From NCBI GenBank assembly GCA_023213395.1, contig CM041465.1:57233741-57297740 (forward strand): a stretch of DNA of 64,000 bases, written 5' to 3'. Below, piece by piece: positions 29,351 through 64,000 of this stretch; the stretch's first letter is position 1, and every line of letters starts with the position of its first letter. The notes under the pieces are model-generated. The model saw only the letters and a program-made list of their open reading frames with translations, did no database searches and was not told the DNA's origin. The translations under genes were made by a program, and so were the position numbers. Origin of the DNA: Cycas panzhihuaensis. Its lineage: Eukaryota; Plantae; Cycadophyta.

Positions 29351-31460
29351 TGTGAAAATGGCCAAATGGCCTTACAATCCCAAGATCTAGAAGCTATGTT
29401 CACTCTAGTTCTAGAAAGCAAATAAACTAGACTAAGAATGAAGCTATGAGACCAAACATGAGCAAGATCAAGCATGAAGAGAAAGAGCAAAATAATACCA
29501 AAGATGAGGAGTTGGAATTGGTCCAACCTCCAAATGAATAGTAGTTTGATTAACAAACTAGCAGCATAACAATGAAGCTCCAACTCTTTATGAGAGCAAT
29601 GAGGAGAGGTCTCAATACATAGAGTGAAAGGAGAGACCTAAGGTATTGGATGTTTGACAAGTGTTAAACATCCAATGTACATGCTTTGGATATAGGACAA
29701 GTGTCCTTTAGGGCTCTCAAGTGAGCAAAAGTGCATGGGGCTCCATTTGACCCTTTAATGACAATGCTGTGTCACTAGGAAAGAATGTGAGTGTGTGCTT
29801 TATCACTTAAGTGATAAGTCACTAAAGTACAAAAGAGTAAAAGTATAAAGGTACGATAGTACATGAATAATAAAGTACATAGGCTTAACATGTAAACATA
29901 AGGTTTAACACCCCCTTACTGTTTACAATGTTAAGTCGGACCCCTAAACCATCTCTAAATTTTACAAATTTTTCTCTACGAAGAGGCTTGGTAAAGATAT
30001 TTGCTGTCTACTCCTCTGTAGGCCTATACTGAAAGTTGATCTCACCACTTTGCACATGCTCTCTAATGAAGTGATGATGAACCTCAATATGTTTGGTCCT
30101 TGCATGAAATACAGGATTCTTGGCCAACTTAAGCACACTTTGATTGTCGCAATAAATCTTGGTGGGGTGATCGTGCTCAAGTCCAAGCTTTCCAAGAATC
30201 CGTTGTAGCCAGATAACTTCACAAGCTGTGCTGACTGCAGCTTTGTATTCTACTTCAGTGGAGGACAAGGCAACATTGGGTTGCTTCTTGCAACTCCATG
30301 AAACAACTGTTGAACCAAGGGTAAAGCAGTAACCCGAGGTTGACCTCTTGCTATCCTAGCAACCTGCCCAATCAGAATCTGAGAACCCTTCTAGAGTGAA
30401 GTTCTCATTATGTGCATACTCAAGGCCATGCTGCAATGTGCCTTTGATGTATTTGAGTATGTGTTTAGCTATATTCCAATGCTTTTGATTGGGTTGAGAC
30501 ATGTATCTAGAGCAAATCCCAACTGCAAATGAGATATCAGGATGAGTGTTGGTGAGATAATGAGACTCCCAATCAACTGCCAATAAAGAGTGGGATCTGC
30601 AGGTTCAACTTCCTCATTGAGAGCAAGCTTTGTGCTGTTCTCCATGGGTGTAGGCATTGGTTTGCAGTCGTGCATCCTGAACCACTGCAAAATGTCCCAA
30701 GAATATTTTGCTTGGGAGATGAAGATATAGCCTGGCTGTTGCTATACCTCAAGGCCTAAGAAATAATGGAGAAATCCAAGATCTGTCATTTCAAAACTCC
30801 TCTTCAAGTCATCCTGGAGAATCTGTATCATCTTAGTGTCATTGCCAGTGATCACTAAGTCATCTATGTACAAGACAATAAAAATGGCATGGTCTTTCCC
30901 AATTGTGATGTACAAGTTAAGATCGAAAGTAGATCGATGAAACCCATGTCTCAAGAAGTAATCATCAATCTTTGAGTACCATGCTCTTGAAGCTTGTTTC
31001 AGGCCATACAATGCCTTTTTTAGGTGACAAACTAAATGCTCCTTGCCTTGTACCTTGTAACTAGGAGGTTGCTGTTGACTTATAGATTCCACTCCCTTGT
31101 GGAATCAGTGCACTTGTCAAGGTTACACAGCGCTATAGTCTAGTTTTAGGACATCACAACATGGTTATACACATATATTCCACATATAATTCCATATATA
31201 ATTCACGAATGGTACACGCAAAGATGTAATTCAATACATACTTCAAGACATCATCAACACACATCAAGAATGCACCAATTTCCACATAACTCTTCTTTAT
31301 TAATTCAGCAGTTCATTTACATTGTGGGGAATGCGTTCTGAGCATTCCAAAGAAAGATACAGCCCGATCTCTGTTACATATGCGTGCCGGATGGTACTTA
31401 TCATGCACTCATGCTCCAATCGGCCATCATGCGATCATCTGCACCTTTGCGTACTCTTGA

Positions 31461-31640
31461 TCTCCGGCTCTCACCCTCCGAGAGTATGTCATGGAATTGA
31501 ATCACTCGGCTCTCACCCTTGAGAGTATACAATATGATTGAATCACTCGGCTCTCACCCTCGAGCACATGACATAGGAATGAATAACTCGGCTCTCACCC
31601 TTGAGAGTATACAATATGATTGAATCACTCGGCTCTCACA
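31461..31640. repeat. 5 x 41-bp tandem array with constant core (A)CTCGGCTCTCACCC in the G2 3' LTR
   Basis: Cores at about 31462, 31504, 31545, 31586, 31627; spacers after copies 2 and 4 are identical. Confidence 0.95.
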
Positions 31641-34600
31641 CTAGAATGGTCCTCAAAGCACCATTAAATATGTCCCTTTGATGCCTTTTGGGTGAAAGGT
31701 TATGACCCAAAGTCATAACCATACCTTTTTGTTACCAAGGTACCCTTTCACTTTAATCATTAGTTATACACTTAACTAATGTCTCTTTAGGTCCGTCACG
31801 TCCGGTAGCTTCCTGTGCCTCCACCGTCCTGCATCATACGTGCACTGCTTCCGCTCGGCTCGTTTCCGCTCTCGCACGTATCGTGATACGCACTGCCGTT
31901 CACGCACCGCCATAATGCACTGCACGCTGATTTCTTCATTGTTTCGCCTCGTATGCACTCCGTCTGATTCGTACTTGCATTCCTTTGGTCAATACAACTG
32001 TATTCCGCCTTCCTCAAGGCCTATGTGTCAAAATATGTCCCAACATCTATCCGGGTCAACATGATTGGGTTGAGCATCCTTGCTCAACAAAAATTCAAAA
32101 TTTGGGGTATTCCTCCCCTCTCTACATTCTAAGGTCGCTCTCCTGCGCCTCTGCTCCTTTCAGTCGCCATTCTGGTTAATAAATCCTCATCTATTGGTGC
32201 TTTGTTTTGTTTGACTCTCCCTTGATTTTCCGTATGATGATATATCTTTCCTCCATGCTTCACCATATTGCTTATGATATGAGTTACGGTTGTTTTCTGT
32301 TTTTAATTTTTGTATTTTATGTTACATACCGAATCGAATCACGTTAGGTATCAAGGCAATTCGATTTTGCCTCAACTTCATGCTGTCGATATGATACAAC
32401 CGGTGATCCTGGTAAGTTGCTCCACCCTAGTTGATATAGGGTTTCGGTTTACTACCCTTGACCATTTCGGTGCAATAAGCGGCACGAGTTTTTTCAACTC
32501 GATAGTGCCATTATGGTACACTTTCTCAATCCTGTATGGGCCTTTCCAATGCATCTTCCATTCTCCTTGGGTCGTTTGGGATTTGTTGTCGAATCGCCAT
32601 ACTCGATCACCCTTCTTGAAATATGATGTCTTGTCGTGGCGGTCGTGCCTTGTCCTTTTCCGCCTTTTCCTTGGTGTGGTATGCTTTGTCGATTTCTTCT
32701 TATGATCCCTTAATTGGTCTTCTCCTAACCAATGTTCTCTACAATGTCTCGAATGGGAAATTCCACATAGTGGTTCTCCATAAAAGGGCTTTACATAATT
32801 TCCAACATATTCTCCATGATTTCTATCTTCTGGAGTGGCAACTGTTTTGGTCACATTCCAAGAAAGTAGGTTACATCTATAGGATGAGGGGTTGACTTCA
32901 TAATTGTCCCGTAGCCAATAATCCACAAATCTCATCTCGTTTTCATCATCTGAAGAATTGTAAATTTCTCCAAAATAGGTCGGTTCTTCTTTACGGTAAC
33001 GAATTCGATGTTGTAGGCTTCTCCGCAGTATGATAGAGGTTTTCTTTGTCACATGAAGAAGTTGTTGCTTCCCTTACAACGGTTGTACTTGATCCATTGT
33101 CAGGTATCACTTCAATGGAATTCTTCCCCAACATTGGTAATACTACTTTATTTCCTTCATCGACAAGGTGAAGGTTACATCTTTCAACTCTGGAGACATT
33201 GGGTTTTGTATAGCCATGGTCTCCCCAATAAAGCTGGATAGGGTATTGCACCTTTCTCCGTTTCCACAATCGTAAAATCGATCTTTACGACAATTCCTGC
33301 CACATCCACCTTGATGTTGGTCAGTTTTCCCATGGGTCGTACTAGTAGTTCATTAGCCAACTTCAGCGAATAAGTCGCTGCTTCCAACCGTGCGCTTCCC
33401 AACTTCCGCCATGTCGAGGTGGGCGGTACATTCACAAATGCTCCCCATCAACGATCACTCTAAACTTTTCTCCCAAAACTGACATGGTTACCATCGGATC
33501 CATGTCGAATGATGGTATGATTTGCTTCCAACTCTTGGTAATTCCTTTTTGCAACACACCTCCTTTAATCCAGTCAATAACCTGGGACAGGGGGATAGTC
33601 AACTGTAACTGTTTCGCCAAATTCTCCATTAATAACAACATTCTGGGAATGTCTTCTTCTGGTAATCCTTTAAACAATTCTTCCATTTGCACCATTTGGG
33701 GTTTTACCGTTGATTCTTCTAGTAGTTTCTCTGGCTCTTTTTGTTTGTTTTTCCGAACGTAAACATTTTTTGTTTCCGGTTTACCCATTGGTAGTATATT
33801 TTCTTCCCGGACTAAACCATCCAACACTTGTTTTGCTTTTTTGTACCGATCCAATTCAGTTGGGGGGTGTGGATATTCTTCATCCACTTTCTCTTTCTGT
33901 TTATTCTGCAATTTCACATTTTTCGTTTCCGGCACGATCGTCATTAAGTTCGTTGCTTTGGCTTTACCCTTGCAATCTTCTGTTTTGTGGTCACTTGGGC
34001 CACGATTTACCACTATCTGACGGTTTTTGTTCGTATTCTAGCTTCATCGGGCATTCAGACTTCAAAGGTGCGAATCAGAGGCAAATGAGGCATCTTCCCA
34101 TTTGTTTCTTTCTTGAGGGCTCTGCACCCTCGTTGTATACACATTGCGAGGTGGGTTGCCTCTTCCCGACCTCGACCTCGAATGATTTTCCTTTGGAATT
34201 GTAGAAACAATCCCTAGTTGTGTGGGTATCTACCTCACATATGTGGCACCACTTCTCATTGGTGCCACATTGTTTTTAAGTTCAATTCACATTCCGGGTG
34301 GTATGTGAGTTTTCTTCACAAATATGGCACCACTTGGTCACCCTTCCAGCAGTGCTCTTTCTTCTTGGTGTCTCTTCTTCTTCCCGATTATTTCGATTTT
34401 CAATCGGGCTACTTCTTTCCTCGGTGCCTCTAATTGAGACTCCTCTTACGCTACTCCAACTTTGGCGGAAGGGTCGATTATCTTGATTCTCTCGACTCTC
34501 TAATCTCATCTTGCAATCTTAGCGACAAGGGATCTTGTCCCCTCCTCAAGGCGTCCATTTCCATCTCGAAATCCAATGCCAACTCCCGAGCATTCTTGAA

Positions 34601-35793
34601 TGATTTCACGGATGAGCATGCATCATGGCTCGCAACTTCTCATTTAGCCCTCGGCGAAGTAATTCTTCATGTTATGATCCGTAATTGTCTCATTGATCAT
34701 ACTTGCCGCAATAATCTTCATTCTACTAATGTAAGTTAGGACGGATTCCTTCGGCCTCTGCACGATTTCGCAATGCGATTTCCACAGCTTCATTACTGCG
34801 AAACTTTTGGAATCTCTCTTCGAACGCTTTCTTCATCTTTGCCCATGGCTCATTTTTTCGTTTCCTTATACCAAGCCAAGGGTACACCTCTCAATGTACA
34901 AAGCGTGCGTGCTTTAATCTCATCTTCGTCTGTTATTTTTCTAACATCAATGAGATTCAAACAAATACACATGCTCTGCTGCGTCAAGTATCATTGAAGA
35001 TTAATTTCGAAATCTCTATGGTCGTCCATCTTGGGAGATTGCAACCGTTCCCCCCCTGATGGTGATCTTTCCCCTCCTCCGTCCTTTGGGGATGTCTTGG
35101 GAGTGACTATGCTGCCGTATCCTTTCCAAACAACGGATTTTTGAACGGAGTTTTAATATGTATAGGTTGTACTACACCTGGTACTTGTATTGTTAATGGT
35201 GTTACCGTAATGTAAGATTGATCGTAACCCTTTTCGCCGAATCTTCAAATAGTCCTCGTTAGCTTGTTTTCCCAATATGCCGAGGACCTTCCTCCGCCTT
35301 CTTATCACTTGTCACCTAGGTCCTTGGGCTGTCCTCATTGGTATACTTCCCTCTGTTAAGATTTCCTTATGTTTTCATCCACTTTAGGCTTCCTTCCAAT
35401 TGGGCTAAACAAATCATCTCTGATAGGGGTTGGTGTCAATACCATGCGTTCGCCATGGGTTTCTTCTTCCCGAGGTGTCTGGGCTCCACTTGCCTCGGAT
35501 CCTTCAACTGACCGTCCCTTAGTCTCGTTGTTTTGCGAACTTAGTCTCCTCGCCCTTCCGAGTTTTGCCTCTTTTGACCATCTTAGTGCCCTTTGCCTTG
35601 GTTTCTTTTTCCTTAGGTGAAGTATCCTTTTGGGGCTCTTCCACCTTGAAGGCCTCTTAGGTGGCATTGGAAGGTCCCACAGGCGCCTGTGGCTTAGTTA
35701 CTGACCGCCATCACGGCGGCCCTGTGGTCCTCGCGCCTTTACACATTCTTTTTCTTTGAAACCCCTAGGCCCTGTCCCTCCTCAATGGACGTA

Positions 35794-35806
35794 GGCAGCG
35801 GAACCA
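35794..35806 (-). promoter_or_regulatory. G2 primer-binding site, tRNA-Glu type
   Basis: Plus strand GGCAGCGGAACCA next to the LTR, versus recalled plant tRNA-Glu 3' end GGCAACGGAACCA. Confidence 0.75.
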
Positions 35807-36186
35807 ATGTTGACTTATAGATTCCACTCCTTGTGGAATCGGTGCACTTGTCAAGGTTACAGTAGCTATAGTCTAGTTTTAGGACACATCAACATGGTTA
35901 TACACATATATTCCACATATAATTCCATATATAATTCACGAGAATGGTACCAGCGATGCAATTCAATACATACTTGACACATCATCAACACACATCAAGA
36001 ATGCACCAATTTCCACATAACTCTTCTTTTATTAATTCAGCAGTTCATTTACGAAGTGGAATGCGTTCTGAGCATTCCAAGAGCATCTGATCCTCATTAC
36101 ATATGCGTGCCAGATGGTACTTATCATGCACTCATGCTCCAATCGGGCATCATGCGTCATCATACGCACCTTTGCGTACTCTTGAT

Positions 36187-36362
36187 CTCGGCTCTCACCC
36201 TCAGAGTATGTCATGGAATTGAATCACTCGGCTCTCACCCTTGAGAGTATACAATATGATTGAATCACTCGGCTCTCACCCTCGAGCACATGACATAGGA
36301 ATGAATAACTCGGCTCTCACCCTTGAGAGTATACAATATGATTGAATCACTCGGCTCTCACA
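36187..36362. repeat. Same 5 x 41-bp array in the G2 5' LTR
   Basis: Near-identical to 31461-31640. Confidence 0.95.
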
Positions 36363-38294
36363 CTGGAATGGTCCTCAAAGCACCATTAAATATGTCCCTT
36401 TGATGCCTTTTGGGTGAAAGGTTATGACCCAAAGTCATAACCATACCTTTTTGTTACCAAGGTACCCTTTCACTTTAATCATTAGTTATACACTTAACTA
36501 ATGTCTCTTTAGGTCCGTCACGTCGTCGGTAGCTTCCTGGCCTCCACCGGTCCCGTCTTGTCATACGTGCTCGTTTCCGTTCGTTACATTCCGCTCTGAT
36601 ACGTACCGTGATACGCACCCGTTCACGCACTTTGTCATACGTACCCAGAATGTTGATTTCTTCACTGTTTCGCCTCGTGCGTACCTCCGTACGGTTCGTA
36701 CTTGCATTCCTTTGGTCAATACAACCTGTATTCCGTCTTCCTCAAGGCCTATGTGTCAAAATATGTCCCAACAGTTGCTCCAAGTATACCTCATCTTGAA
36801 GATCGCCATTGAGAAAGGTGCTCTTAACGTCCATTTGAAAAACCAGCCAATTGCATTGAGCTGCTAAGGCCAAGATGAGTCTGATGGTGTTCATGTTAGC
36901 CACCGGTGCAAAAGTCGCCTCATAATCTATGCCTTCTTTTTGTTTGAACCTTTTTGCAACAAGGCGGGCCTTCTGGTGCTTAAGTGTACCATTGGAATGG
37001 AATTTGGTCTTGTAGACCCATTTGCAGCTGATTGCCTGTTTATGTTTAGGCAATTCGACCAAATCCCAAGTTCCATTCTTTTCAATAGAATGGATTTCTT
37101 CATCCATGGCAGCCTTCCAATGTTCATCTTTAGAAGCCTCCTCAAAGGTGGAAGGCTCATCAACACATAGCACTTCAGCCATAAGTGCGAAATTGGTTTA
37201 CTGCCTATATCTTGATGGACATTTTCCTTCAATAATCTAGTCATCCTGCATTGTTTGAGTATACCATTTGGGTAACTTTTTGATTGATGTGACTTGAACC
37301 TCAAGATCTTCTGGTCTAAGTGGTTGATCAATAGAAGACGTGCTAGGATCAAGTGGAGCTGATGATGTGGATGGTCCAGCAAGTGCAGATGATGTACATG
37401 GAGTTGAAGATTGAGAGGGAAGGAAGGTCTCAACAATCTGTTTGCCTTTGTCAATGGGGGGTTGGATGGATGCTGTATCCAACTCCTGATCATCTTCTTC
37501 AGCAAAGATTACATCTCTTGAGAGATGCATTTTCTTTCCAATGGGATTGTACAACTTGTAGGCTTAGCTATCAATGGCATAACCTACAAAGATGCACTTT
37601 AGACTATGCTTGTCTAATTTAGTTCTTTGCTAATCGGGGATGTGCATATAAGCGGTGCACCCAAAAGTCCTCAAATGGCTGACAGTTGGCTTTTTGCTAG
37701 ACCATGCCTCCTCTAGTGTGATGTTGGTGACTGTTGTTGTTGGATTCCAATTTGCCACATAGGCAGCTGTGTGGAATGCCTCTGCCCAGTAAGCTCGAGT
37801 AAGTCCCTTGGCATGCATCATTGCTTTGGCCTTGTTAGCCAAAGTTCTATTCATTCTTTCAGAGACTCCATTTTGTTGAGAAGTGTGAGGAATAGTAAGT
37901 TGTCTCTGAATGCCATTGTCCTTGCAGAATTGGGTGAATTCGTCTGAAGTGAATTCGCCTCCATTGTCTGTCCTTAGTGTTTTGATGGATTGGCCAAACT
38001 CGTTCTCCACTTCAAGCTTGAATTCCTTAAACTTTTGAAATACTTCGGACTTACGTTTGAGGAAGTAAACCCAAACTTTATGGGAGAAATCATCGATGAA
38101 GGAGATGTAGTACAAAGCTCCTCCAAAGGAAGCGGTGGACATAGGTCCACACAAATCTGAGTGTACTAACTACAAAGGATATGATGCACTCCAAGCTTTG
38201 CCTTTAGGGAAAGGCAAGCGATGTTGTGTCCCCATTATGCATGCTTCACAAAGACATTTCATGCCATATATCTTGGGAAGCCCATGTCTAGGCC

Positions 38295-41200: not shown

Positions 41201-43126
41201 CGAACATTCCCAAGGATAAATAGATACCCAGGGAACAGGCAATGCACAAAATAAGAGCAAATGAATTTGATGTTTCTAGTTTAGGAATTTGAATTTCTAG
41301 GATTTCATCTAAGGAAATGCAGTGGATAGCACATTTCCTATTTACTAGAGCAATATTAGGACAAAAGAATTCATTTGTCCCTAGTCATTTGCGTACTATG
41401 TTAATAAAGGTTATGGAGGGTCATAAATTTAATTGGGCTAGGTTTGTCTCTAGTAAATTTTTGAGGAATTTAGAAGTCGTAAAAGGTGCTACTTAGTCTG
41501 TTCTATTTTTCTACCCTACTTTGTTGCAAGGGTTATTATTTTTGCAATGCCCAAGTATCCAACTTCTTGAGGTTGAGGAAGGACAACCTCTATTGGCAAA
41601 ATGGACAGAATTATTTTCAAGGTAGCGTGGATGGGGTTCTTTGCCTTTGACAAAGTTAAAAGAACATGTTAGTAATTGGCTCCACCTACAGTGGCACGCT
41701 AGCACTCCCTAGTCGTGCTCAGTGAAGAAGGAAGAACTGCGAGCAGGGGCAACCTCGCAGACCCAAACAAGGGTGTAGAATCAAAAGAATAAAGAGAAAG
41801 AGAGTAAGAAAGCAGAGATAAGAGAGGGGAAGCAAAAGGTGGAGGAAGAACCTACCACGGGTAAGGATGGAGTGGATCAGCCAGAGAAAAAGTCAAGGAT
41901 AGTTGAACCATTAAAATGCGAAGAAGAAGAGAAATAGAGGAGGAAATTAGCAACAAAAAAAAGACGGCAAGAAATTTTAGAAATCTTGAATAATAAAACA
42001 CCAAAAGTAAAATTTAATCAATTAGAGGACTATTTGGAAGAAGGCATAGACCCAATGAGCTATGACCTGCAAGACATCCTGCAATGGAAGACTTCCTTTT
42101 TGGCAAAGGTAACTAGACCACTTGTCACTAAGTTGGAACAAAGGAACATAAGACCTTTGCTAGATATGCAAAGAATTCAAAAGCTTAAAGAAAAGTTGGC
42201 AACTATAGAAGCCTGCCTGGAATTTCTGAAAAAATTTATTATGACCTGGGTAAAGAATACCAATGCCATTACTCCTAAGGTACAAGCTTTTAGAGGTTGC
42301 TTCCACTAGGAGATTCCCCTGGGCCTAGATGACATAATTTATAAGTTGAGAGCTTGGATCCTTCAAATGTAAGAGGACACAGCACATGCAAATAAATTTT
42401 GGACTAAAATGCATAATTTGTGTCGATCATAGTTGGGGTCATGATTATGAGTGGATCGTGGTTGAGGTTATAGGTATGAGCCGATTGTCGTTGGGGTCGA
42501 GAGTACAAGACAATCATAGTTGGTGTTGTGAGTACAAGCAGATCGCAATTGGGGTCGTGCCTACGAGCCGATCGTAGTTGGGGTTGCAAGTACAAGTGGA
42601 TCGTAGTTGGGTTCCTGAATACGAGCCGATCATAGTTCGGGTTGCAATTACGAGCCAATTGCAGTTGGGGTTGCGGTTGCGAGCAGATTGCACTTGGGAC
42701 CATGGTTGCAAGCTGATTGCAATTGGATGATTATACCCGATAATAGTTGCAATTAGATTGTAAAGAGAAAAGTGATTATCAAGGAAGGCTAGCCGTTGTA
42801 ATTGTTTTGTGAAGTAATTAACGGTAGTTGAAACAATTGATCTTTTTTGTATAAGTAGTAGTTGGTTCAAGGAATTAAGTATGTATGTGTGTGTGTATGG
42901 GCAAGAAAGCCTAAAAAGGGATTGTAAGGAATTTGTTCTCTTGCTGTGGTAGACTTGACATGCTAGTCCGATTCTTGTAGACTGTTGGGTCTGCGTCTGG
43001 TTGTGAAAGGACCAGACACAGTTCCCTATTATAATAATATTATGTTTTGCATCATATTGTGTATCCTTTGTGCTTACTTTATTCATTATGTTGGTAGTTT
43101 CATATGAGTAAGGTTCAAGGCACACA
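38295..43126 (+). mobile_element. G3: gypsy 3' part (partial RT, RNase H, INT, extra ORF3 about 40961-42415, LTR remnant about 42420-43126)
   Basis: VAGHEVY..GFSGYN; FHVHVDAS; EREGLGMLYALQKFRHY; WLGPYKV; LTR end gagtaaggttcaaggcacaca resembles the G5 LTR end. Confidence 0.85.
42425..42745. repeat. About 11 x 29-bp degenerate tandem array (gatcgtagttggggttgc..tacgagcc) in the G3 LTR region
   Basis: Regular 29-bp periodicity read directly. Confidence 0.85.
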
Positions 43127-46100
43127 ATCACCTAATTCAAGAAATGTGATCCCTAGTTGCTTACAATTTCTAATGGGCAGCCATATCTTGTGATAATCAC
43201 TTCATATAGAATACTATCGACATTCGCATTCCTTACTGGCCTTGTTTCTACCCACTTGGTTATATAATCTGTGGCTGCTAAGATATATCATGATTGGGAT
43301 AGTCAAGTTGCTGGTTTGATAGGTCCAACGAAATCAAGACCCCATTTTTCGAATGGTGCCAAAGATAGGATTGGATTTAGAGGTTGAAAATCTTGACAAC
43401 TTGGCTTTCCGATTCTTTAGTAGTAGCAGCATTTTTTAATCCAGTTGTTGATATCCTTGAACATGGTAGGCCACCAAAATCTTGTCATTAACACTTTTCT
43501 CCATGTTGCCTCCTTACCCATATGTTCCTTGACCACACCTTGATGGTCTTGGACTATTATTTGTTCAATCTCGTGAGGCTTTACATAATGATGTAACACA
43601 TCATCTAATCTCAAGAAATATAACTCGTCGTGAATAAGTTGATATGGTTCCACCTTCTGAACCAAGTGTCTTCTCTTTGTTTTATCCAACTCTGGTGGTA
43701 GCTCTTCTTTCTCTAGATGCTCTAGAATTCCTTTATACCATTTGATCAGAACTGATTCTACACTGTAAAACATTGCATCTAAGAAGTCATCAGGTATTCC
43801 CATGGATTTTCCTCCATTTTCAATCCTAGATAATTGATTAGGAATGACATGAGCCTTTCTAGGTTTGACCATGATCTTAAATGTAAATTCTTGAAACAAC
43901 ATTAGCCACCTACTAGTTCTTCCTCTTAACATTGGCTTATTCATGAGATACATAAGTGCTTAGTGGTCCACATAAAAGATAAACAGATTTAACAATAGAT
44001 AGTGTTGAAATTTTTGCAAAGCATACACAATCTCTAGGCCTTCTCTCTCGGTCGTTGCATAATTTTGTTATGCCTTTGTCAGTTTTCGAGTGGCAAAATA
44101 TATGGGATGATCAATATTTAATTCCCCTAGTTGTGGGAATATGCACCCAATGGCATATTGTGAAGCATCTACATGCACATGGAAGATTTTATTCTAGTTA
44201 AGAAATCAAAGAATGGGCGTCGATGCAATCACTCTTTTTATGGACTCGAATGCTTCTTGTTGCTCTTCTCTGCACTCCCATTCGATATCCTTCTCGATAG
44301 ATCCTCCAAAGGTCCTAATATACATGCATATCCCCTTATAAACATTCTATAATATCCAATTAGTTCCAAAAATCCTTTTAGTGGCTTTCATGTCACTAAT
44401 ACTAGAAAATGTAGAATAGATAACACTTTTGTTGGATCTGTCAATAAATCATTTTTGCTTACGATGTGAACCAATAAATTTGGAAATGGAATCGAGAATA
44501 TACACTTCTATGGATTCAAGAAAAGATTGTTTTCTCTACACGTTTGCAACATTTTCTTCATATTTTCCATACGATTCTTCATTATGCCATAAAGAGTCTA
44601 GTTGTCTAGGATTATAGCCACCTTGTCATATATCTTTTTGAAGATATTGATCAAAATGCACTGAAATATGGTTGGTGCATTGGTTAGCCCAAAGGGCATG
44701 ACCCTGTAGGCATATGTTCCCCATTCTATCATAAAAATGGTTTTGGCTTGATCCTTAAGAGCAATCTGCACTTGATTGTACACAATAAGCCCATCTATGA
44801 ATGAATAAGCTTCTTTACCCCCAACCATCTCCAATACATCTTTCGTAAAGGAAATTGGAAACAAGTCCTTTATGCTTACCTTATTCAACTACCAATAATA
44901 TACACATACTCTAATTTTCCATTTTTTTTTAGCACCACTACCATTGGGCTTACTTGATCACTATAGTTGATCTCATGGATATACCCTACTTCTAACATCT
45001 TATCCAACTCTGCTTTAACCTTCTCCTTATGCTTAATATTCATGTGGTAGGGCTTCTATTTCATTGGCTTGGCCACTTCGATTAGATCATATGGTGCATC
45101 CCAGTCTTTGGAGGGATGCCCTTGAGGTCCTTATAGGACCACGCAAACACATCATTGAACTCTTTAAACAATGCCTGTGCTTCCAACAATTGTTTTCTCA
45201 TATCAATGATGTTTCTATGGTGGTATTTCTTGTATTTCTAATTCCTTCTCCTTTGGTTTGTTTTATCTCATGCACATATTTCATCACGGTTTCGCCCATA
45301 GGTTAATTTTTTTCCTCTTCTTTCTTTACTACTTCTTCGAAGACTTTCCTACCTACCTCGAAGTGGTCTATTTACACTTGAGGGTTGGGGTAATTGTTTG
45401 CTACGTTCTCTTTTCTTTTTCTTTACTCCTTGTTATAGTTTCACATTCTTGCTGGATTTGAAGACTATAGTCATTAGATTCGTCACTTTAACTTTCCCCT
45501 TGGAGTCCTTCATGTGTTTATTCCCTAGTTCACAATCTTTGCATATGGAAGGACATTGCTTGTGTGCCTTAGCCCTTAGGCAGTTTGATTTCTAATGCTC
45601 AAATTCAATGCACACTAGGCACCTGCCAATAGTTGCCTTCTTCTTAGATGTTTCTGGTACATTTTTGGCAACGTATAGGTGTCTAGATGAATCAACACCT
45701 TTACTTGTGCCTCTTCCTCTACAGTTTCTCCCCCAATAATTAAAGTAGCAATCTTTTGTGTTGTGGTCGCCCACATCGCATATGTGGCACCATGTATCTT
45801 GCTTCCTCATAGCATTATTTTTAGGGTTAAGTTCACATTCTTTCATGGAATGAGAATCCTCTACCCAAATATAACACCATTTATCAATTTGCAATTCTTT
45901 CCCTTTCTTCTTCTTTCCTTTCACTTCCTCCTCTTCCTTCCTATTGGCTTTTATTTTCAATCTCGCCACTTCTTTCCTGAGGGCTTCTACTTCAAATTCT
46001 TTTTTTGCCTTCTCCACTAGGAAGTACTATCAACAATTTTACTGCCATTTTATCTCCCAAAGCTCATCTTGTAGTTTTAATAATAAGAGATCGTGCCCTC

Positions 46101-50561: not shown

Positions 50562-51427
50562 CACTGTAACCTTCCACCAGAGCTAACTTTTTCCAGGACC
50601 TTTTCGAGCATGAAATTGCAATATTCAAAGTCTTCATGCTTTAGCTTTAGCCTATAATTATAGCTTGCATAAACTGTATTATTTCTTGGGAACTTATTTT
50701 ACTTCCAACGAATCCTCCTTTTCTGCAATAATAACTTGAACTAATTGACCATTTCCATGTTTTGCGAACTAAATTGAACAAAAGGTATCAATTTGGTGGC
50801 GTATCTTTTCCATCATGCCGAAAATGTACCTCATTAGTGCTAATGTTTTTCTAGTTAGGATGTATAAAGAAATAAGGTGACACGAGAGAGGCATATGATA
50901 TATGAGTGTGTGATCCCAACCCTCAACCAAAGGAGCTAGCTCGTGGCATGATTCTTTAATCTAAGAAGGGGAATTTGGAAAATTTTATATGGCTGGCATG
51001 AGTACAACAAACAAGTTATCAACGGTGCATAGGGACAAGTGCTAGCACCCAGTGTGGCACTTCAAAATTTGGGTTTGTCAGGTTAGGGTGTGTGCGTCCT
51101 ACTCCCTTACCCTAACATTCTCGAATACATTCTACAAGAGTTACAAGCAAGAGAGAAAGACACAATGTTGGAGCACAAATAACCAAGCTTTCATTATCAA
51201 ACGGGCCCTACGTCTAGTCCTCTCACAGCCAGATGTAGGCCTGAACAGTGTACAATGGCTACAATGGACGACATTTCGCAGGAATACACAGAAATACAAA
51301 TCAGTTTTTTTTCCCTTTCTTACAATAACTTTATTTATATTTCCTATCCTACAGTTATAACTACTTGATGTAACTATTCCATCGCTCTTTAACATCATTT
51401 TACACTTTATTCATAACTAATGTTGCC

Positions 51428-51731
51428 CTAGTTGCATCGGTCGCTACCCTAGTTGCACTAGTCGAGAATCTGATTGCATCTGCTGCGATCTGGTTGCACT
51501 TGCCAACAATCTAGTTGCACCTGCCTAAAATCCAGTTGTACTTGCCAGTCGTCTAGTTGCACCTGCTAGCAATCTGGTTGCACCTATCTATAGTCCGGTT
51601 GCACCTGCCAGTAGTCTGGTTGCACCTGCCAGTAGTCTAGTTGCACTCACTGCGATTCAGCTTGCACTGCTCACATTCCAGTTGCATCTGCCTGAGCTTA
51701 GTTGCACCTATCTAAAGCCTAGTTGCACCTA
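51428..51731. repeat. About 15 x 20-bp array (ctagttgcacctgcc..) in the G5 3' LTR
   Basis: gttgcac recurs at 20-bp period. Confidence 0.85.
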
Positions 51732-63720: not shown

Positions 63721-63736
63721 CCCGGCAACGAAACCA
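63721..63736 (-). promoter_or_regulatory. G5 primer-binding site, tRNA-Glu type
   Basis: Plus strand CCCGGCAACGAAACCA versus recalled tRNA-Glu 3' end CCCGGCAACGGAACCA (one G-U wobble). Confidence 0.85.
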
Positions 63737-64000
63737 ATGTGCGCCCTACTCCCTTACCCTAACATTCTTGAATACATTCTACAAGAGTTACAAGCAAGAG
63801 AGAGACACAATGTTGGAGCACAAATAACCAAGCTTTCATTATCAAAAGGGCCCTACATCTGGTCCTCTCACAACCAGACGCAAGCCTGAACAGTGTACAA
63901 TGGCCGTAGTGGACAACACTCTGTAGGAATACACAGAAATACAAATCAGTGTTTTTTTCCTTTCTTACAATAACTTTATTTATATTTCCTATCCTACAGT

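Follow-up and report, generated by a model that had tools for sequence, protein, structure and literature searches.

Why should an LTR retrotransposon carry, tandemly repeated within each of its LTRs, sequence that matches part of the very tRNA its PBS appears to recognise, and do such pieces do anything for the element? The question is raised by a minus-strand element in the window, by which we mean the whole 64,000-nt stretch of DNA analysed here, plant DNA crowded with retroelements (copia reverse transcriptase (RT), gypsy RT and integrase, and LINE-type domains). The initial annotation of this DNA had read the repeats as complements of the tRNA-Glu anticodon arm and proposed that they form a multivalent module for tRNA capture. 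As judged by sequence comparison, the tRNA origin of the array is secure. That the tRNA-derived pieces act as accessory contacts for the primer tRNA, of the kind known from Ty1, Ty3, HIV-1 and RSV, is a tentative reading built on modelling and analogy, to which we would assign a probability of roughly 40%.

Alignment of the two LTRs and reading of the sequence delimit an element of 5,701 bp (~5.7 kb) at 31073-36773. Its parts are as follows, G5 and G3 being other elements in the window.

31073..36773, minus strand: whole element, a Ty3/gypsy deletion derivative nested in another repeat
31068-31072 and 36774-36778, both flanks of the element: target-site duplication GTTGC, 5 bp
35808..36773, minus strand: 5' LTR (element sense), 966 bp, TG..CA
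31073..32045, minus strand: 3' LTR (element sense), 973 bp, TG..CA
32046..35807, minus strand: internal region, 3.76 kb, with protease and integrase C-terminal remnants and basic gag-like ORFs
33184-33435, minus strand: protease remnant, 47% identical to the G5 protease (tblastn, E 4e-21)
within 32378-33052, minus strand: integrase C-terminal remnant, 29-33% identical to G3 and G5 (tblastn)
35794..35806, minus strand: PBS, 13 nt, one base off the LTR end, complementary at 12/13 positions to the tRNA-Glu 3' end including CCA

Since the PBS and the remnants of the protease and the integrase tail all lie on the minus strand, the element runs from right to left. None of the eight internal-region ORFs scanned contains a Pfam domain, and RT, RNase H and the integrase core are absent from the internal region by Pfam, by its translations and by tblastn; only ~500 nt separate the protease remnant from the integrase remnant. 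With RT, RNase H and the integrase core deleted, the element is non-autonomous, as the initial annotation had held, and it keeps protease and integrase C-terminal remnants only. A protein search found no relatives of the 224-aa integrase-tail ORF. Adjoining the 3' LTR there is just a short purine-rich run (GGATAGA in element sense, 32046-32052) as a candidate polypurine tract. The LTRs are 87.5% identical overall, the figure from which we judge its age, and this copy of the element is old and defective. The family to which it belongs is extremely abundant in at least three species, according to a survey of contigs. The insertion boundary at 36774 is borne out by empty-site contigs from three other species, in which the left flank is read directly before 36774; by their sequence these are paralogous empty sites. 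The repeat that houses the element (31045-31072 and 36774-36900) is itself very high-copy, and contigs of several species span the uninterrupted site.

The array, described beforehand as present in both LTRs, was recovered in each of them by Tandem Repeats Finder.

36187..36361, minus strand: array of the 5' LTR, 41-bp x 4.3 tandem; element RNA carries the tRNA complement
31465..31639, minus strand: array of the 3' LTR, with 98.9% identity to its 5' LTR counterpart

The period is 41 bp, with 4.2-4.3 copies per LTR, and the arrays are equally readable as 2.1 copies of an 82-bp unit with 91% matches. Unit 2 equals unit 4, units 1 and 3 represent a second unit type, and unit 5 is truncated. There are five cores per LTR, comprising three exact copies of the 15-mer ACTCGGCTCTCACCC, the altered first unit and the truncated last one. 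The earlier description of five units sharing a near-invariant core followed by tt and GAGAG thus holds for the number of cores; the full form is limited to units 2 and 4. Unit 3 carries TC and GAGCAC, and unit 1 shows small indels between the LTRs. When up to two mismatches are allowed, the 15-mer has nine matches in the window, all of them inside the two arrays, against 0.03 expected by chance. Contigs reveal array copy-number variants among the family copies.

On the plus strand, the array core is identical over 15 nt to nt 27-41 (sequential numbering) of plant-type tRNA-Glu(CUC), and units 2 and 4 resume, after a 2-nt insert, with nt 42-46 of the same tRNA. The local alignment of the array with tRNA-Glu scores 33, above 5,000 of 5,000 shuffles; this score and the excess of 15-mer matches exclude a chance resemblance. 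The reference for the comparison was obtained by scanning metagenome contigs exactly for the core followed by GAGAG at a gap of 0-2 nt, which returned at least 120 stretches, all gapless. ARAGORN called tRNA-Glu(CTC) in 25 of the 25 loci scanned first, and 119 tRNA-Glu(CTC) genes over all loci, so the proposed identity of the core with the tRNA-Glu(CUC) anticodon arm now stands on more than 100 metagenome-contig genes. The retrieved genes vary in their acceptor stems and are constant in the anticodon arm, a constancy that follows from the design of the search. From these tRNA-Glu(CTC) genes we infer that the host's own tRNA-Glu arm is identical to the array core. Since the element lies on the minus strand, its RNA carries the complement of the array, in agreement with the first reading. 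Considering its sequence, the array is most likely a tandemly amplified antisense copy of ~20 nt of the tRNA-Glu(CUC) anticodon arm.

The matches listed from the metagenome scan for the gapped core comprised tRNA-Glu genes only and included no LTR copies of the family, and the LTR form of the core had no match in viral contigs. A scan of 596 Gb of prokaryote genomes gave 13 matches in bacterial MAGs, close to the chance estimate for a 19-mer with one degenerate base. ARAGORN found no tRNA gene in the window, and a search of the literature for the anticodon-arm sequence as literal text found none. Two of the metagenome plant contigs bear ARAGORN calls of tRNA-Lys(ctt) ~250 nt from a tRNA-Glu gene (L021, 5593-5664; L023, 3652-3723). 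A 'tRNA-Lys' returned by a scripted ARAGORN run, which may correspond to these two calls, is by its sequence a tRNA-Glu copy in decay whose anticodon loop has mutated.

The PBS, which had been noted as an independent match to the tRNA-Glu 3' end, does match the same tRNA as the array, at 12 of 13 positions, the mismatch falling at tRNA position 68. A search of the element for all exact matches of at least 8 nt to tRNA-Glu recovered the arrays and the PBS and, in addition, a D-arm 10-mer that is common to both LTRs (31136-31145 and 35869-35878) and belongs to a longer box.

35865..35887, minus strand: D-arm-complementary box of the 5' LTR, 23 nt, PBS-proximal, against tRNA-Glu nt 4-28
31132..31154, minus strand: the same box in the 3' LTR, with the 10-mer at 31136-31145

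The box covers the 5' acceptor strand and the D-arm of tRNA-Glu in a layout of a 10-nt exact run, a 2-nt gap and then 9 nt, and it lies 58-81 nt upstream of the PBS in element sense. When the 103-nt PBS-proximal segment of the LTR was shuffled 5,000 times, 12 of the shuffles reached the box's alignment score of 28 (p ~0.002). All three differences between the box and the tRNA are G.U-compatible in an RNA duplex, and at 35885 other copies in family contigs have T, the tRNA-Glu letter. Specificity of the box relative to other tRNAs was assessed against Gly and Ser controls only and the comparison is hence a weak test. The coordinates of the box (tRNA nt 4-28) and of the array core (nt 27-46) abut on the tRNA, and the two pieces are collinear and of one polarity, ~300 nt apart. 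PBS, box and array are all tRNA-sense on the plus strand and therefore complementary to the tRNA in the element RNA, where three separate stretches could pair with one tRNA molecule. The position of the D-arm box near the PBS strengthens the idea of extended primer contacts. Another D-arm match, 16/18 to tRNA-Glu nt 9-26 at 44595-44612, was set aside; it falls within RT-coding sequence of a further gypsy element on the minus strand and is probably due to chance.

Two observations concern the conservation of the core. In a comparison of the unit types, the 16-nt core shows no differences and the other 25 nt show 10 (Fisher p 0.003; run-length permutation p 0.047); this test compares what are in essence just two independent unit types, and some circularity is built into it. 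Of the array variants listed from thousands of contigs of the family in three species, the four best supported (36253, 36283, 36335 and 36339) all fall outside the core. Some decayed copies of the family show C-to-T changes inside the core.

Energy predictions rank the array first among possible partners of tRNA-Glu. When 25,584 windows on both strands were ordered by predicted duplex with tRNA-Glu, array units occupied the top seven places; the box reached only about the top 0.3% of this background, a point against accessory pairing. The predicted box duplex has -36.5 kcal/mol as compared with -21.2 for the PBS duplex, and pairing of a unit with the folded tRNA is predicted to bring a net gain of -14 to -19 kcal/mol, as compared with -2.5 for shuffled units. 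The initial annotation had further envisaged a bulged hairpin that exposes GUGAGAG. The predicted fold of the unit instead pairs CUCUCA with UGAGAG and buries the anti-anticodon heptamer, and element-sense array RNA is predicted to fold no more stably than its shuffles (z +1.23; 174 of 200 shuffles at least as stable). The analogy with T-box specifier loops, also drawn at first, fares no better: an Rfam scan of the element at E up to 10 returned three chance-level matches, with no tRNA and no T-box model among them.

An AATAAA downstream of the array in element sense is indeed present at the place where it had been reported, 31296-31301 on the minus strand.

36028..36033, twin 31296-31301, minus strand: AATAAA (element sense), candidate poly(A) signal by sequence only, ~155 nt downstream of the array

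The claim attached to it, that the array is likely transcribed, holds for any part of an LTR, because every LTR segment occurs at least once in the genomic RNA, and it therefore provides no test. Two TATA-like candidates flank the array: the upstream one, near 36376-36382, is close to it, and the downstream one is at 35903-35937. Should the upstream site be the promoter, the array would lie in R with AATAAA downstream; should it be the one at 35903-35937, the array would lie in U3, ~250-430 nt upstream of the start site. The latter coordinates are those of one copy of a 12-bp x 3 tandem repeat that each LTR contains on its PBS-proximal side (unit CACATATAATTC; 31170-31204 and 35903-35937), which presents three TATA-like motifs in element sense and is a promoter candidate.

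Element G5, a different gypsy element on the minus strand (51094 to beyond 64000), has a PBS (63721-63736) that matches tRNA-Glu at 15 of 16 positions, and its LTRs also contain motifs reminiscent of this tRNA. About 120 nt from the PBS there is a hairpin with a 6-bp stem (63858-63878) whose loop heptamer is, at the RNA level, complementary to the CUC anticodon loop; its counterpart in the other LTR (51213-51233) has two stem changes, and a homologous hairpin of G3 on the other strand (42996-43016) is the version for the UUC isoacceptor. The anti-anticodon heptamer by itself occurs in the window at background frequency (27 found, 17 expected). A G5 LTR further contains a 21-bp x 15 array (51419-51730), the unit core of which resembles tRNA-Glu D-arm nt 9-18, tRNA-sense on the plus strand. 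One 12-nt exact tRNA-Glu match lies in it (51632-51643), a score equalled by 5 of 5,000 shuffles (p ~0.001), and only half of the unit's most invariant part, GTTGCACCT, resembles the tRNA. As a parallel to the array described above, these sequence motifs are suggestive only. G5 is apparently coding-competent, keeping RT and other pol ORFs, and the presence of tRNA-Glu-like LTR motifs in such an element speaks against the earlier suggestion that the feature is tied to non-autonomy.

How might pieces of a primer tRNA come to lie inside an LTR? The sequence points to RT copying of the primer tRNA followed by an 82-bp tandem duplication. The pieces are long, near-perfect, collinear and of the right polarity, which fits RT copying better than a stepwise evolution of complementarity. 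Plus-strand synthesis normally copies only the 3' end of the tRNA, regenerating the PBS. Here, RT would have copied the packaged primer tRNA deeper than usual during this step, the copy would have become fixed inside the LTR, and the part corresponding to the anticodon arm would then have been multiplied by 41-bp and 82-bp tandem duplication. As in primer-tRNA read-through during plus-strand strong-stop synthesis, the antisense of the tRNA is found on the sense strand of the element. The classical product of read-through lies directly downstream of the PBS, whereas the pieces described here are inside the LTR, and an extra step (a PBS shift, recombination or a template switch) is therefore needed.

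Once in place, the pieces could serve as accessory primer-tRNA pairing sites, that is, as an extended or multipartite PBS. With the acceptor stem opened on the PBS, the 5' strand of the tRNA and its D-arm would anneal to the nearby box and the anticodon arm would anneal to one unit of the array, and such accessory pairing would stabilise or position the primer. Provided that the array lies in U3 or R, pairing with it would also draw the RNA's 3' end near, ready for the first strand transfer. A more far-reaching version of this model, which we consider unlikely, would see in the tRNA-Glu-primed gypsy elements a multipartite primer system in which the primer is almost wholly unfolded onto the genomic RNA (at the PBS, at a U5 box that takes the 5' strand with the D-arm, and at LTR units that take the anticodon arm), the array recruits several tRNA-Glu molecules or bridges the RNA 5' and 3' ends for strand transfer, and RT copying of the primer supplies new contact sites by self-templating.

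Primer tRNAs have been described to contact the genome outside the PBS as well, within U5 or the leader close by and within U3, for Ty1, Ty3, HIV-1, FIV and RSV, and the genomic RNA of Ty3 pairs with its primer at the PBS and at further LTR-derived U3 sites, including a contact with the D-arm (PMC5371799). Like the yeast element Ty3, the element described here belongs to the Ty3/gypsy superfamily and has, as candidates by complementarity, sites for its primer tRNA beyond the PBS. The two differ in that Ty3 is primed by tRNAiMet and uses T- and D-arm contacts made by single-copy segments, as demonstrated by biochemistry and genetics, whereas our element matches tRNA-Glu, involves the anticodon arm, and has matches of 15-23 nt, with one putative site present four to five times. 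With Ty1 and the retroviruses (RSV, FIV, and HIV-1, where the A-rich loop meets the anticodon loop of tRNA-Lys3) it shares accessory complementarity near the PBS, in U5 or the leader, which in retroviruses lies upstream of the PBS. The crossed topology is also common to retroviruses and this element: a site upstream in the genome faces an upstream part of the tRNA, with the box 58-81 nt from the PBS. The known accessory boxes, those of Ty1 and retroviruses among them, measure 6-8 nt and are loop- or arm-specific. Here, in contrast, duplexes of 23 bp and of 15-20 bp would be possible, which implies a near-complete unfolding of the tRNA, and the array is much farther from the PBS.

Short head-to-tail units inside the LTR, varying in copy number among family members, are also a feature of other plant elements, in the form of U3 enhancer repeats (Tnt1 BII, the Tto1 13-bp motif) and of LTR or 3'UTR minisatellites; to our knowledge, and in difference from the array, none of these has a relation to the primer tRNA. 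The pea element Cyclops may have a tRNA-Glu PBS. In a survey of plant LTR retrotransposons, tRNA-Glu is not among the primers named in the main text (PMC6317226). We found in the literature no report of extended contacts between the RNA of plant elements and their primer tRNA, and no description of tRNA-Glu-primed plant elements with boxes of this kind.

Complementarity to the primer tRNA outside the PBS is present, in the box (against nt 4-28) and in the array cores (against nt 27-41, or to 46), and the issue is whether it is used. It is nearly as likely that it is not, and that RT-copied or retro-copied pieces of tRNA-Glu simply ride along as an inert fossil or an ordinary LTR minisatellite, for which tRNA pairing is irrelevant, and which in U3 might act as promoter or enhancer repeats. 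At 15-23 nt the matches suggest raw copying more than selection, and a copy can persist with no function at all; their length, near-perfection and collinear, abutting tRNA coordinates resemble one copied piece that was later split. Slippage or duplication typically yields a higher-order structure such as the 82-bp one seen here, family copies differ in array copy number, and the TATA-like triple repeat at 35903-35937, downstream of the array, would put the array in U3. What favours this passenger reading most directly is that the array gives no sign of excess structure, that it lies 380-550 nt from the PBS, and that it is repeated: five copies are unneeded for priming. Such a reading leaves aside that the 16-nt core is invariant while the homologous spacers differ at 10 of 25 positions, that the common family variants, among those listed, avoid the core, and that the box, with its G.U-compatible differences, sits at the place of the retroviral U5-tRNA contacts. 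The unrelated LTR of G5, with a primer of the same class, also contains tRNA-Glu-like motifs. Accessory contacts are favoured by where the D-arm box sits, by the invariance of the core and by the G5 parallel.

The other explanations are considerably weaker. A multivalent tRNA-Glu capture device or sponge, by which a non-autonomous element would compete for the primer or for packaging or would soak up tRNA fragments, appears improbable under the structural models: the five complementary sites per LTR with their strong predicted duplexes, the non-autonomy of the element and the great abundance of the family in several species all suit it, but the loop-presenting hairpin is not predicted, G5 has tRNA-Glu-like LTR motifs together with RT and pol ORFs and so removes the link to non-autonomy, and we know of no system that uses arrays for primer capture. 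The multiplicity of the units is more likely a slippage by-product in a repeat than a designed 'sponge'. No likelier, on the sequence evidence, is a target of host defence, in which small RNAs derived from tRNA-Glu (5' fragments or halves) would guide silencing at the antisense pieces. The box and the array core do complement the part of the tRNA found in 5' fragments and halves, and in plants as in mammals it is established that tRNA fragments target the transcripts of retroelements; against this, a liability of this sort should be lost, not multiplied, in a family of very high copy number.

Least probable is an LTR with a Pol III promoter of the Helenus/Cassandra kind, or a chance resemblance, the latter being excluded for the array. 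Helenus (TRIMp3) and Cassandra are non-autonomous elements whose LTRs contain the gene sequence of a small cellular RNA, a tRNA or 5S, in a sense copy that is competent as a promoter (through A and B boxes or through the 5S internal promoter), and the tRNA-like part of Helenus has no relation to its PBS (PMC10886601). That tRNA-like LTR sequences are known in such elements (PMC10886601), and that the D-arm box coincides in part with the tRNA's A-box region, lend this explanation some support. Our element resembles them in being a non-autonomous LTR element with small-RNA-derived sequence in its LTR; it differs in that its pieces are partial, antisense to the element and without a B box, come from its own primer tRNA and include one that is tandemly multiplied, and, unlike a miniature TRIM, it measures 5.7 kb with LTRs of ~970 bp. 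Neither T-arm nor B-box similarity was found in the pieces, ARAGORN called no tRNA, and no Rfam tRNA model matched at E up to 10. Antisense orientation, the missing B box, the absence of a tRNA call and size rule out an LTR of the Helenus/Cassandra type.

Extended contacts between retroelement RNA and primer tRNA have so far been studied in a few yeast elements and in retroviruses. Should the contacts proposed here be real, they evidently arose when the primer was copied into the LTR and the copy was then multiplied, which would be a simple route for a retroelement to acquire or strengthen primer recognition. An abundant family offers thousands of natural replicates in several species, and comparative genomics alone could put the idea to the test. 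If the pieces are inert, they would still constitute a clear molecular fossil of RT reading deep into a primer tRNA, as well as a caution for the prediction of tRNA-fragment targets.

The 98.9% identity between the arrays of the two LTRs was considered as a sign of function and rejected, since a single inserted copy is not selected for transposition. The LTR pair as a whole is a mosaic, 98-99% identical in the array and the next 170 nt and 83-92% elsewhere, with the lowest identity, 58%, in a GC-rich segment at 31811-31940. Point mutation after insertion does not explain such a pattern, which indicates, and on the sequence is likely to reflect, conversion with other copies or uneven decay.
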